From Podarcis vaucheri (lineage: Eukaryota), in assembly GCA_965113315.1 (NCBI GenBank), contig OZ220363.1: a DNA stretch of 64,000 bases; one strand, written 5' to 3'. Within the stretch, counting starts at the first letter, position 1. Each line of letters begins with the position of its first letter. Shown here piece after piece: positions 47,247 to 50,400 of this stretch. The translations under genes were made by a program, and so were the position numbers. The notes below the pieces were generated by a model that was given only the letters and a program-made list of their open reading frames with translations, made no database searches and was not told the DNA's origin.

Positions 47247-47459
47247 GGCGTCGCCGCAAACTTTCCGCCGGGGCGCCGGGAACCACTCGCTGCCGCCGCT
47301 ACTGCCGCCGCCGCCTCCTCCTCCTCCTCCGGCGCCGGCGCTGCACTTGCTCCAAGCGCTCTGGCCCCTGCCCGGGTCCGGCTGAAGGCACCAGGCGGCC
47401 GAGCCCAGCCCTTTCGGCGACGCGGGGTCCGGGTTGGGCACGCAACTCCCCGGCTCCAG
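47247..47459 (-). CDS. WT1: Putative CUG-initiated 71-aa N-terminal extension of WT1
   Basis: In frame with the ATG and free of stops. The CTG at 47459-47457 is in context GCAGGG-CTG-G. The peptide [27 protein letters not shown]...AWSK resembles the mammalian extension. Confidence 0.5.
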
Positions 47460-50400
47460 CCCTGCGGGAGCGGGAAAAAGCGACAGCGCGAGGTTGGTCT
47501 CCAGGGTCGCCTTCGGGTCCGGCGGGCAGCGAAGTTGAGGAGACACACACAGAGAGAGAGAGAAAGAGAGCGGGTGTGAGGGAAAAGAAAGGCGAGCGAG
47601 GCAAAAAAAAAAAGCAGAGTGCGGGACTGGCGGGAAGCGGCTGAGGGGAAGACCTGGCCTGCTGAACTGGCTGCGCGGGAGGAGGGAGGCGCGAACTGAC
47701 TGACTGAGGAGCCGCCCGCCTTGAACTTCTTACCTCAGCGGCGGCTTTGCCCTGAAGTCCCCAAAGCTCAGCTAATTGAGAGGGGGGAGCCGCGCGAGGC
47801 GGCAGCGGCAGCAGAGGAGGAGGAGTCAGTGGCAGCAGCGGCAGCAGCAGCAGCGCGGGCGCTCCCTTCACACTTCGCTCGGCGCCTCAGAAGCACTCGC
47901 AGCCCCGGGGGCAGGAGCGGACAGGGCAGACGCCTCTCGCTGCGGCTCTCCCGCCACTGCGCGGGCGGAGGGGCGGAACACCGAGCCCTCCCGCATCCCG
48001 CGGAGCCCTGAATTCAGCCACCCGACCTAATCACACCCGGGTTTCTTTCCCGGGCAAGCTGGAGGCTGCTGAGGCGAAATGGTCGGAGGCTGGCTTGGCT
48101 CCATAAGCGGCTTAGTTTGCGAAGGGAACTTGGACAAGGCTCAGGGAGAGGAAAGGCGCTTGGAAGCGGAAGATGCCCAATGCAGCGCCCGGGCTTTCCA
48201 AGGAAATGCCCCTCCCTGGATGAAACCCAGGGAGACAGGGCGGACCACGCTGAGGAGCCAGGCTATCCCCACGTGCCCACATAACACCTGTTCTCAATAC
48301 TCGTCCCTCAGTGCTAAAAAAAAACCCGACCTTGTAATATGGCAGTCCTTACCCTTTGGAACTCCCTGCCCCTTGACATCCGTCAGGAACTTTCGGAGAG
48401 CTGCTTATAACATTTAGGCCAGCCTGACCGGACATAGAGAAGTTATGTGTGTTTAGCTTATTGCTGATTTTACTTTTTGAATGTTTTGATACCGGCTTTT
48501 AACTGTGTCTATAAATAAGGTTCTCTTGGGGTGGGTTGTAAACCGCTTGGAGGTTTTATTACAGTCAAGCGATGCACAAAAACTGTTAATTAATGCACAA
48601 AAACTGTTAATTAAATAAGACGGACCAGGAGTTTTAAAGCACGCCCCGCCTGCAATAATCCTAAACAGGAGGTCCTGGGAATTGCAGCTCTGTGTGAATT
48701 GGAGCTCTACAGTTCCCAGGTTTCTTTGGAGGTCCTTTAAATGCATGCTGTGTAGCAGCCTATGTCTTCGGAGTATGTCCGTCCATCATCTAGAAACACA
48801 CAAGGATTTAAGAAGTTCTTAAATTAAAGACATCCGATTGGGGTCGCAGATTCCCCTAATGCGCCCAGTGTCACGTGGCACAAATATACTCCATCCTCTT
48901 CTTCATCATCTCATATCCATTAGGTTGGCCGGCTGCCATCCGAGAGTGCTTCTTCCTGAATTTCACTGGAGGTCGAATCCTGCTTTAGGGCTCCCCTGCC
49001 ATGTGCTTTTATGGAAGCCGGTCTAGCTAACGATGGCCTTAAGGCGCTGGTGAAGCTCATCTTGCAGCTCTACCTCTGAGCTGCGAAACACGAAGCCTCC
49101 GATTCGAATCTCACCTCAGCCAGGAGGTCTCCCTCCCTCAGCATACGTGGGTGTCCATCACCTTCCGAGCCAGTTAGACGAATTACAACCCGTTTCTAAG
49201 AACGATCAAGGGCACGGAACACTATACAGTATACGGTAAATGCTAGTAGATGCACAGATGTCAAGCAGGTGACATCCGCTGAAAAAAGGGAAAGGGGGAC
49301 TCTGGCGATGTTCTAACAGGAAAAGTAGAAGGAAAGGGAGAGCGACTTTTAAAGTAAAACACCGCTTCCTTCGCACTTCGTGAGCCCGGTGGTTGTGTTA
49401 ATATGCATCCAGACAGAAAAACAATGAGGGCGGATTCTCGCTTCAACAGGGTTTAAAGCAGTTGTTGGCATCGGTGGTCTGTCCCGGGAGACAATGGAGT
49501 GCGCCTCCGGGGATGAAGTCAAGCCGCTGGAGAATCACAGCGCCTGCTGTGGCTGCAGAGACCAATAACTCATAATTGCTGCCTCCCGTGTTGCTTTTGT
49601 CTCCGTAGGAGCACTGAAGTGACCTTCCTGGGGTGCAAGCCTGGGCAGTGTGCATGGAGGTCATGGGCTGCCCAGAATACAAGACTTCTTGGCCTCGCTG
49701 ATGTGGCCCAAAGGAAAGCAGAGCAAAGTTTGGCACCAGTTTGGCTGCAAGGGTTGCCGGAAGAAGACGCCATCCAGCCGTCCCAGGGACTCATGATCCT
49801 GGATGCTGCAGACCTAAGGCCCAAATCATAGTGAAATTGCTCCACCAAACAGCGGAGCTGAACAAAAGGGAATGGGGGCACCATTTCTGCCATTATTTCT
49901 TCCCAGACCTTATTATTGAATTGCCCTACAGAATACCTTCCCTACTAAATCCGGCTCTTCTTCCGCCTCTAAGGGTATGCACGAATAAGGCTGCCGCCCC
50001 AAGCACGCCTTACTCGGAAGCAAGTCCTTTGAAACCAGTGGGACTGACTTCTGAGTACAAATAATGAGGCTGCTTAAGAGAGCCGCATTTGAGGAAGGTT
50101 TCTTCTTCTAATCTCCTGAACTGAAGAAGAGCTTGAAATTCATAGCATCAGCTGAGGCGGATCTGCTCTCTGTTGCTGGATCCCTGCGGTTACTTGAAGA
50201 AAAGTCATTTTTCACAAGTCCCCCCCCCCAGTTCATTTTGCCCCTTCTGATTTTATTTTTATATCTGGTGTCGTCACTGGTCGTCTGTATTGACCTATCA
50301 AGGATCTCCCCGCTCTCTTGCTTTCAGGATCAACTCGACACACTTTTGCCACTTGAGCCGAAGGGGTGGTGACCCTCCCGCTTTCCACATAAGTCATATG

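Follow-up and report, generated by a model that had tools for sequence, protein, structure and literature searches.

Immediately 5' of the WT1 start codon, the genome of Podarcis vaucheri has a stretch of DNA that is, judging from its sequence, the counterpart of the CUG-started extension of mammalian WT1. That extension is translated in mammals, according to PMC4474557 and PMC12045569 (which cite Bruening and Pelletier 1996), and the title of Miles et al. 2003, as given in PMC4474557, labels it "mammal-specific." We found homology between this stretch and the mammalian extension, a reading frame that is conserved across amniotes, and substitutions among congeners that look like those in coding sequence. 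We see the same in-frame stretch in placental mammals and an opossum, in many birds, and in squamates of four lineages, and since the frame is kept in all of these groups, the extension is probably as old as the amniotes. This bears out an earlier proposal, made from the sequence of this locus, that the extension predates the split between mammals and reptiles. From these results, we infer that the leader would be part of the mature mRNA, that initiation would occur at the CUG codons at 47504 and 47459, and that the extension may have a function. Support for translation of the extension in P. vaucheri is indirect.

The window that we analyzed is a stretch of 64,000 nucleotides from contig OZ220363.1 (assembly GCA_965113315.1). 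All positions refer to this window. The features of WT1 exon 1 and its leader are as follows.

46836..47246, minus strand: canonical coding part of WT1 exon 1, from the ATG at 47246-47244 to the donor after ..AIRNQG.
47247..47459, minus strand: in-frame extension of 71 codons if CTG 47459 is taken as its first; homolog of the CUG-initiated extension of mammals.
47304..47330, minus strand: GGA/GGC repeat that reads as nine Gly; here the extension varies in length.
47346..47444, minus strand: core of the extension, C-V-P ... P-A-S-P-K-G-L ... W-C-L-Q-P ... G-R-G-Q ... W-S-K; the best-conserved columns across squamates, birds, opossum, and placentals.
47457..47459, minus strand: CTG with G at -3 and G at +4 (context gcaggg-CTG-g); would add 71 amino acids.
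47460..47501, minus strand: the 14 codons that separate CTG 47504 from CTG 47459; also readable as a pyrimidine tract and a CAG acceptor that ends at 47462.
47502..47504, minus strand: CTG with A at -3 and G at +4 (context gcgacc-CTG-g, near-optimal Kozak); would add 86 amino acids; our preferred start candidate.
47581..47795, minus strand: CT-rich sequence (leader or promoter) 5' of the extension, without frame constraint.
47730..47732, minus strand: TAA, the first in-frame stop upstream, within a conserved GGTAAGAAGTTCAAGG block.

The canonical part of exon 1 is 88% identical to Varanus WT1, and it matches positions 1-132 of Pfam's WT1 family (PF02165) with E = 9e-56. This match begins at the Met of the AUG; the extension (47247..47459) lies outside of the profile, and in the Pfam search no family covered it. 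All of the remaining WT1 exons were found within the window. As the preliminary description had stated, the WT1 frame is free of stops for 161 codons upstream of the ATG, the first in-frame stop is the TAA at 47732-47730, and the next minus-strand ATG upstream is at 47996. Both of the in-frame CTG codons that it had pointed to are there (GGG CTG G at 47459 and ACC CTG G at 47504, for +71 and +86 amino acids), and our translation of the 71-residue peptide, including the run of nine Gly, is identical to the version it gave. There are further in-frame near-cognate codons at 47552 (CTG), 47546 (GTG), 47486 (CTG), 47441 (GTG), and 47408 (CTG). The GGTAAGAAGTTCAAGG block around the TAA is recognizable in models from birds and from Mustela. 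A 5'-partial model from Mustela begins at a conserved GTTCAAGG block, which hints at a transcription start near 47730. Conserved noncoding blocks at this locus also look protein-like when they are translated.

To identify homologs, we compared the 100 codons upstream of the ATG, without canonical WT1, to other proteins and ORFs using BLASTP. The similarity to the stretches from mammals and birds is beyond chance: we obtained E = 5e-18 for a bird ORF, E = 2e-5 for a WT1 model from Monodelphis, E = 0.008 for Mustela, and E = 1e-23 to 1e-29 for three other squamate-like ORFs. Comparing a profile of the sauropsid sequences to a profile of the placental sequences across 38 columns gave E = 0.0017. 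The sequence from the opossum falls in between, with ATLD, PASPR-L-S-WCLQ, and WSK as in sauropsids. We left out P0106, a Logan ORF that we took to be from human or another primate, from the later slices, alignments, and comparisons; P0103 and P0104, which are similarly human- or primate-like, were left out of the alignments, comparisons, and further searches. For human proteins, we used only database names and lengths, and no contig that seemed to be human entered the analysis.

Other searches added little. When we searched with the extension only, matches to poly-Gly words dominated, and just the three squamate ORFs were returned. A search against representative sequences added only an opossum, a rhinoceros, and one fish ORF. 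A scan of metagenomes with the extension gave no match, and a search for antisense ORFs, which might recover these codons by sense/antisense pairing, found only two mammal-like ORFs. Upstream of the ATG, the fish ORFs P0119, P0120, and P0124 had no significant similarity to the extension (E at least 5.5), and P0124 and P0116 had no match at E ≤ 100. (By eye, the fish ORFs have D-W-F-P-G or V-C-E near the Met.) We do not claim a pre-amniote origin of the extension.

As in mammalian CUG-initiated WT1 (cugWT1), the extension belongs to the WT1 gene, is in its frame, and is directly upstream of the AUG, and its length would be 71-86 amino acids, versus 68-73 amino acids in mammals. It has in-frame CTG codons in good context, at which initiation might occur. 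The shared motifs (C-V/A-P, P-A-S-x3-L-x-S-x3-C-L-Q, W-x-K, and a basic R-R-x-K/R near the end) are collinear. The preliminary description had relied on a mammalian peptide that agrees with the database proteins (Macaca P0107), and had listed CVP, the PAS block, WxK, and GSE as shared in the same order. The first three are indeed collinear across species, but GSE is not shared: in the window, it aligns with the mammalian ERL instead of SGSEP, and other squamates and birds have GEW, RDW, or GDW at that position. Apart from occurring in a squamate (and birds have it just as well), the extension differs from cugWT1 in other ways. In sauropsids, its last third reads E/D-W-F/L-P...R-R/Q-K-V-C, and about 9 additional residues separate the two candidate CTGs. 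In mammals, an AKT site, S62 in R-R-S-R-G-A-S, is reported to stabilize cugWT1 (PMC12045569). This site has no counterpart in the window, where the last 14 residues before the Met do not include any Ser, and birds and other squamates likewise have no Ser at that place. S62 is a regulatory feature of the mammalian protein instead of a defining feature of the extension.

We then asked whether the stretch evolves as protein-coding sequence. The preliminary description had suggested looking for indels that preserve the frame and for dN/dS below 1, and we found the former across amniotes and the latter among three congeners. From A-T/I-L-E to the ATG, the conserved blocks are in the frame of the ATG in every lineage that we compared. 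At least 5 indels outside of repeats keep the frame (-2 amino acids, +2, +5, +1, and 1-2 amino acids), as do several changes in repeat length. Because the ORFs from other species were retrieved as open in this frame, they are subject to ascertainment bias. Conservation of the frame ends upstream of about 47580. For example, translating a GGTAAG-AGTTCAAGG block in the frame of the ATG gives V-Q-G for the window and for Mustela but E-V-R for birds, and in the window E-V-R belongs to a different frame.

To compare congeners, we aligned reads from three of them to 47247-48300 (leaving out the canonical part of exon 1), and we counted changes in the 63 readable codons at 47346-47534, which skips 33 of the 71 extension codons (47247-47345, with the repeat). 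Of the six substitutions, five are at third positions (P = 0.018, binomial test), and four are synonymous when read in the WT1 frame, while the remaining two frames give 0 and 1 (P = 0.044). With just six substitutions, dN/dS among the three congeners is about 0.18. There are no indels in 47346-47534, whereas the 215 nt of leader further upstream (47581..47795) show eight indel states (+1, +3, +7, -4, -4, -1, -1, and +2), and 7 of those 8 are not multiples of three. The 99-nt core (47346..47444) has just one substitution, at 47406, which is synonymous. The 14-codon segment between the two CTGs (47460..47501) has three, all at third positions and two of them synonymous; this segment has the same length in birds and is nearly identical in squamates. 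In a neighboring noncoding control, 4/6 substitutions were in the same phase. Among sauropsids, 44 single-step amino acid replacements had a mean BLOSUM62 score of +0.07, versus -0.74 for random single-step changes in those codons (z = 4.6), with the qualification that the alignment was itself scored with BLOSUM and that GC-biased substitution is outside of the model. Overall, and on small numbers, the stretch shows coding constraint in the WT1 frame.

Alternatively, this could be an untranslated 5' leader or CpG-island promoter that is conserved at the nucleotide level (as a transcriptional element, an antisense transcript, or an element of the mRNA), so that the protein likeness is a by-product of GC-rich, stop-poor DNA. 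We consider this unlikely. The open frame by itself proves nothing. In this island of 65-75% GC, when the same stretch was simulated with a first-order Markov model, 161, 86, and 71 codons were free of stops in 32%, 39%, and 43% of simulations. A second minus-strand frame also lacks stops over the same stretch, and the exact antisense ORF is 324 amino acids. The leader carries no AUG, which is uninformative because AT dinucleotides are nearly absent from both strands. GC content at codon positions 1, 2, and 3 is 0.69, 0.76, and 0.83 in the extension, versus 0.66, 0.60, and 0.92 in the canonical part of exon 1, so compositional periodicity is weak. A clearly noncoding conserved block further upstream also yields protein-like matches. 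No RNA run matched when we searched sequencing runs with the stretch. (Run X17, a possible RNA run, turned out to be DNA, since its contig continues unspliced through intron 1; target capture is its probable origin.) Also, the title of Miles et al. 2003 (via PMC4474557) describes mice that lack the extension as normal. On the other hand, an untranslated leader would not be expected to keep its frame through at least five indels when the neighboring leader does not, or to have its synonymous changes concentrated in the WT1 frame, or to have conservative replacements. The stretch had no match in Rfam, and the RNA 3' of the CTGs folds into less structure than its shuffled versions (z = +1.7 and +2.2). 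This also implies that there is no start-enhancing hairpin downstream of the CTGs. Finally, the mammalian homolog of the stretch is translated.

Our best reading, which we consider reasonably likely, is that this is an ancestral amniote coding extension that is reached by leaky scanning. The mammalian N-terminal extension would have its ortholog in the 213-258 nt that immediately precede the WT1 AUG. A minority of scanning 43S complexes would initiate at CUG 47504, CUG 47459, or both, and the rest would scan on to the AUG at 47246. This would produce WT1 with 86 or 71 extra residues beside the standard protein. Similar leaky scanning at a near-cognate codon, with a strong Kozak context and in frame upstream of an AUG, yields two proteoforms per mRNA for PTEN-L, c-MYC, and FGF2 (PMC12045569, PMC9789052). 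These are unrelated in sequence to the WT1 extension.

Which CTG would be the start? CTG 47504, CTG 47486, and CTG 47459, with their contexts, are unchanged in the three congeners, while CTG 47408 is CTC in congeners. In protein translations, the Leu at the position of CTG 47459 is present in all of the sauropsid ORFs. The Leu of A-T/I-L-E (CTG 47504) is kept in the window, in P0001, in P0126, and in birds, and mammals have A-I/T-L-D. At what is presumably the position of the classical 1996 CUG, Mustela, whale, sheep, and opossum have Pro or Arg. Human isoform D (RefSeq NP_077744.4) is listed at 522 residues, which equals 449 + 73, and Macaca P0107 begins with MDFLLLQ, so the annotated start in primates is the Leu of "AILD." In our alignment, this Leu aligns with CTG 47504 (the Leu of "ATLE") and not with CTG 47459. 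The local pairing around the CTGs is different in the MAFFT alignment, so the match at the level of codons is ambiguous. Depending on the alignment, then, CTG 47504 would be the preferred counterpart of the start that is now annotated in primates. The preliminary description had placed a CTG at almost the same position as the mammalian start; in-frame CTGs are indeed present, but the counterpart would be 47504 rather than 47459.

The extension might also be coding but be reached by splicing, either within the leader (from GT 47733 to AG 47463-47462) or from an upstream exon that has an AUG and is joined to that acceptor. We view this as improbable. The pyrimidine tract and CAG do end at 47462, right before G-CTG, and there is a donor-like GAG/GTAAGA at 47734/47733. 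Furthermore, three bird models (Hirundo P0016, Limosa P0034, and Lonchura P0134) join an upstream exon that contains an AUG exactly before L-D-P-G-S-C-V, and in a bird genomic ORF (P0132), that exon is about 1 kb upstream and is followed by residues that suggest a donor (as seen from the translation). However, the bird models are automatic predictions without visible RNA support, and we found nothing in the window that significantly matched the upstream exon from birds (best E = 1.9). In the 47733-to-47462 form, an in-frame TGA (47737-47735) directly precedes the junction, so no upstream AUG could feed the frame. Upstream of 47459, there are substitutions of the synonymous type (at 47478, 47490, and 47526), and the length from 47504 to 47459 is kept between birds and squamates. 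(Splicing from 47733 to 47462 would remove CTG 47504 and would leave CTG 47459 two bases inside the new exon.)

That the likeness to the mammalian extension is due to chance similarity between low-complexity, GC-rich translations is extremely improbable: pairwise BLASTP comparisons to placentals alone are weak (E = 0.008 to 0.55), but those to opossum (2e-5) and birds (5e-18) and the profile comparison (0.0017) are not, the blocks share their order, their frame, and their position beside the ATG of the same gene, and chance is effectively refuted by the intermediate sequence from the opossum.

More broadly, we lean, by a modest degree, toward the view that the extension is not a mammalian invention: it would have arisen in the ancestor of amniotes or before, be under purifying selection, be translated in squamates and birds too, starting at conserved non-AUG codons, and have a conserved role that the mouse knockout missed. 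This role would be carried by the C-x-P, P-A-S-P-K/R, W-C-L-Q, and W-x-K core and not by the AKT site, which only mammals have. Retention of the frame across amniotes shifts the dating of an extension that the literature has repeatedly called "mammal-specific," argues for a selected function even though knockout mice are normal, and suggests that the residues that matter are those of the core rather than the AKT site. It would also make chick embryos a usable experimental system for this proteoform. CugWT1 was recently proposed to be an oncogenic form of WT1 (PMC12045569), and genome-wide studies of non-AUG proteoforms have so far been mostly within mammals (PMC9789052), so the WT1 extension could be a test case for how deeply such proteoforms are conserved.

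In our literature search, we did not find any paper that describes the extension outside of mammals. Some automatic gene models from birds and opossum already include the stretch in frame: Pezoporus isoform X6, Meleagris XP_019466824.1, Hirundo DUI87_25359, Lonchura OWK56517.1, and Monodelphis XP_056659766.1. They reach it via far-upstream AUGs or predicted upstream exons, or else are 5'-partial, and none of them annotates a CUG start or ties the stretch to the mammalian extension. Pro, Gly, Ala, and Ser are abundant in the extension, whose core has two Cys, two Trp, and an S-P-K/R motif. Relative to the rest of exon 1, the extension evolves about three times as fast, and the Gly repeat has a different length in each sauropsid lineage.

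The window holds a complete WT1 gene on the minus strand (870-47246), which we located by tblastn with Varanus WT1 as exon 1 and eight more coding exons. The WT1 ATG is at 47246 (GCC-ATG-G), and upstream of it the frame runs for 161 codons without a stop, ending at a TAA (47732-47730). The extension would add 71 amino acids from the CTG at 47459 or 86 from the CTG at 47504. The coordinates, CTG contexts and 71-residue peptide in the preliminary description all match our re-reading of the sequence.

Coding exons of WT1 (tblastn, Varanus protein) and near-cognate codons upstream of the ATG in the WT1 frame
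47246-46836, minus strand: WT1 exon 1
about 38460-38332, 36768-36649, 26877-26794, 15067-14966, minus strand: further WT1 coding exons, in order
about 14077-13922, 6590-6495, 2912-2799, 992-870, minus strand: remaining WT1 coding exons, in order
47552, minus strand: CTG, poor context
47546, minus strand: GTG, poor context
47504, minus strand: CTG, gcgacc-CTG-g, with A at -3 and G at +4, near the Kozak optimum
47486, minus strand: CTG
47459, minus strand: CTG, with G at -3 and G at +4
47441, minus strand: GTG
47408, minus strand: CTG

The upstream region is a CpG island (65-76% GC), and the open WT1 frame by itself is not beyond chance. In first-order Markov simulations of the same stretch, the frame was free of stops over 161, 86 and 71 codons in 32%, 39% and 43% of cases. 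A second minus-strand frame is likewise free of stops over this stretch, and the exact antisense ORF has 324 amino acids. In the coding part of exon 1 that is already known, GC content at codon positions 1/2/3 shows strong periodicity (0.66/0.60/0.92). In the extension the periodicity is weak (0.69/0.76/0.83), and chance alone gives 0.81 at "position 3" in a clearly upstream stretch. Pfam's WT1 domain starts exactly at the ATG methionine, with the extension outside it. With an open frame that chance can explain and a weak GC periodicity, the case for coding rests on comparison across species.

We searched for homologs with residues 1-237 of the read-through ORF (window:46572-47546:-). In-frame matches extending over the upstream part came from three squamate-type Logan ORFs (P0001, P0002/P0003 and P0126), from many bird ORFs (in clusters that include Meleagris and Lonchura), from Pezoporus isoform X6, and from extended mammalian proteins of Macaca, Mustela, Ovis and Eschrichtius. 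When cluster representatives were searched, Monodelphis XP_056659766.1 and a model from Diceros joined the list. P0106, P0103 and P0104, which we took to be human or other primate ORFs, were left out of the alignments and comparisons. With the upstream residues only, the window matches squamates at E = 1e-23 to 1e-29, birds at about 5e-18, opossum at 2e-5 to 9e-5, and placentals at 0.002 to 0.55. A sauropsid profile matches a placental profile with E = 0.0017 over 38 columns. The opossum is intermediate: its A-T-L-D, P-A-S-P-R-x-L-x-S-x-x-W-C-L-Q and W-S-K are sauropsid-like, and placentals have lost S-P-K/R and the Trp where opossum and sauropsids keep both. Because the conserved blocks are collinear and directly precede the Met of the same gene, we judge the homology of the extension across amniotes to be solid. 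The preliminary description had proposed this homology to the mammalian counterpart, and the E-values, the collinear blocks and the opossum intermediate support it; the "GSE" that it also matched lies outside the homology in the alignment.

In mammals, the extension is described as a CUG-initiated addition of 68 amino acids; PMC4474557 cites Miles et al. 2003, whose title calls it "mammal-specific." Full-text literature searches turned up no account of it in other animals. The main significance of a sauropsid counterpart of the known mammalian extension is that it overturns this label. Recent work describes the extended protein (cugWT1) as the oncogenic form of WT1 and reports an AKT site in it at S62 (PMC12045569). 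That site has no counterpart here: a basic R-R-K is present, without a following Ser.

We trace the extension to amniotes and make no deeper claim: beyond amniotes the comparison covered fish ORFs, and BLAST found no significant similarity between them and the window upstream of the ATG. By eye, three fish ORFs (P0119, P0120 and P0124) have D-W-F-P-G or V-C-E-P-A directly before the Met, which recall the sauropsid E/D-W-F/L-P and K-V-C-E-Q. These residues may reflect nucleotide conservation around the start codon rather than an older extension.

Between A-T/I-L-E (47510) and the ATG, all lineages have each of the conserved blocks in frame with the ATG. Sauropsid ORFs keep this frame through at least five indels outside repeats (-2, +2, +5, +1 and 1-2 residues). 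The chance of five such indels is about 0.004 if lengths are unconstrained, but the compared ORFs were retrieved for being open in frame, which biases this test. Among the best 120 matches, however, none was a sauropsid ORF whose extension is broken. The Gly/Ala-rich part has also changed length several times among sauropsids with the frame kept, and the alignment of sauropsids to mammals has additional indels in the extension.

Amino acid identity between the window and other squamates is 70-77% in the extension and 90-91% in the rest of exon 1; for birds, the values are 65% and 83%. The extension therefore evolves about three times faster than the rest of exon 1, yet far from neutrally. Read-through translations of the intron from the same ORFs have nothing in common. 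Among sauropsids, 44 single-step replacements in the extension average +0.07 in BLOSUM62, versus -0.74 when nonsynonymous single-step changes are drawn at random for those codons of the window (z = 4.6). As caveats, the alignment itself was scored with a BLOSUM-type matrix, and the random changes lack GC-biased substitution.

For closer relatives, we used Logan contigs of DNA reads over 47247-48300 from three congeners (organisms B, D and E, with two runs for E). The runs listed are DNA, from the window's organism and four differently labelled relatives, and no RNA run that contains the stretch is among them. The small runs X17-X20, which resembled RNA, are more likely target-capture DNA: the X17 contig (1365 nt, depth 33, from an 89-Mb run) starts within intron 1, at about 46240, and continues without splicing to 47602. 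This suggests that WT1 exon 1 is targeted by capture probes in the species group. Repeats (47247-47345, 47535-47580 and 47796-47863) were left out of the comparison. The 63 readable codons (47346-47534) have six substitution sites and no indels.

Substitutions in the extension, window versus congeners
47406: CTG>CTC, Leu=Leu, position 3; alters the CTG at 47408, CTC in all three congeners
47475: TTT>TTG, Phe>Leu, position 3
47478: CTT>CTC, synonymous, position 3
47490: CTC>CTT, synonymous, position 3
47522: CCG>TCG, Pro>Ser, position 1
47526: TGC>TGT, synonymous, position 3

Third codon positions hold five of the six changes (P = 0.018), and four are synonymous in the WT1 frame, versus 0 and 1 in the other frames (P = 0.044, with 26% synonymous sites). 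In these 63 codons, dN/dS is about 0.18. The density of substitutions is alike in the extension (3.2%) and the flanks (2.8-4.3%): the extension differs from the flanks in where substitutions are placed, not in their number. Coding constraint would predict such placement and a conserved noncoding element would not. Farther upstream, 47864-48300 has 19 substitutions, which are phase-neutral (6/3/10). The numbers are small, and in a control stretch (47581-47795) four of six substitutions are in the same phase as in the extension, so we consider the congener result suggestive of coding constraint. These adjoining 215 nt also carry eight indel states (+1, +3, +7, -4, -4, -1, -1 and +2), which puts the upstream boundary of any coding constraint between about 47600 and 47534.

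Some individual differences stand out. The window's Phe (TTT, 47475-47477, in L-S-L-F-P) is unique; the congeners have TTG, which encodes Leu and is also a near-cognate start codon, and Leu stands here in every other sauropsid ORF. The three congeners differ in the length of a minus-strand T-run at 47602 (+1, +3 and +7), small indels that are not multiples of 3 cluster at 47695-47742, and relative to the window all three have 19 nt inserted after 47881.

The three congeners share the CTGs at 47504, 47486 and 47459, along with the bases around them, and every sauropsid ORF that reaches that far has Leu at the 47504 and 47459 positions. The 522 residues of human isoform D are 449 + 73, and the CUG described in 1996 is the 68-codon start, at the L before Q-D-P-A-S. 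The Macaca ORF P0107 begins with M-D-F-L-L-L-Q, and isoform D (NP_077744.4) is listed at 522 amino acids; thus, the primate start as now annotated falls on the Leu in A-I-L-D and precedes the 1996 CUG by five codons. If anchored on A-I/T-L-D/E, the annotated primate start appears to match the window's CTG at 47504, and the 1996 CUG would match the CTG at 47459 (L before E-P-G-S). MAFFT favours a different local alignment around the CTGs, and mammals and birds were compared at the protein level, so codon-level orthology to the mammalian starts is ambiguous. At the presumed 1996 CUG position, Mustela, whale, sheep and opossum carry Pro or Arg, and Mustela also has Pro at the A-I-L-D position; even among mammals, the start site seems to move.

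Translation of the extension in this species is plausible, and the coding-type evidence lends it indirect support. No start-enhancing hairpin was found, as the 105 nt after each CTG fold worse than shuffled sequences (z = +1.7 and +2.2), and no Rfam family matched. The most likely route would be leaky scanning on an AUG-less leader: there is no minus-strand AUG between 47996 and 47246, and a minority of ribosomes may start at the CUG at 47504 and/or 47459.

Another conserved block, GGTAAGAAGTTCAAGG (about 47775-47715, minus strand), is recognisable in birds and Mustela. It reads GAGCTTTGGGG...GAGGTAAGAAGTTCAAGGCGG in the window, ..ELCKV..EVRRARR in bird ORFs, and GVQGS.. where a partial Mustela model begins. 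In the ATG frame it gives V-Q-G in the window and Mustela and E-V-R in birds, a reading that is in another frame in the window. Because its frame relative to the ATG varies between lineages, this block is noncoding, even though its translation resembles protein, and is probably core promoter or the 5' end of the mRNA. The 5'-partial Mustela model begins at the conserved GTTCAAGG block, which hints at a transcription start near 47730 in the window.

The block also holds the first in-frame TAA and a donor-like GAG|GTAAGA (47734|47733), which raises the risk that the leader is spliced: removing 272 nt, from this donor to a CAG at 47462, would eliminate the CTG at 47504. The codons for L-F-P-A-P-A-G (47480-47460) double as a pyrimidine tract and the CAG ending at 47462, just before G-CTG at 47459. 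Automatic models for three birds (P0016 from Hirundo, P0034 from Limosa and P0134 from Lonchura) join a predicted exon that lies upstream and has its own AUG (..L-S-R-K-L-E-S-K-E-R..F-P-G-A-V-P-G) to the homologous acceptor, and the bird genomic ORF P0132 has the same exon about 1 kb upstream, followed by residues consistent with a donor-like sequence (from the protein reading only). However, this exon has no significant match in the window. Coding upstream of 47459 is favoured by synonymous-type changes at positions 47478, 47490 and 47526 and by the equal length of the 47504-47459 stretch in birds and squamates. The spliced form would place an in-frame TGA (47737-47735) directly before G-CTG at 47459. 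A short ATG ORF of 25 codons (48027-48104, minus strand), which lies some 600 nt 5' of the acceptor-like site, ends in ..A-C-P-G-K-K-P-G-C-D-stop; it is faintly like the end of the bird exon, A-F-P-G-A-V-P-G (E = 1.9, not significant), and would join WT1 out of frame.
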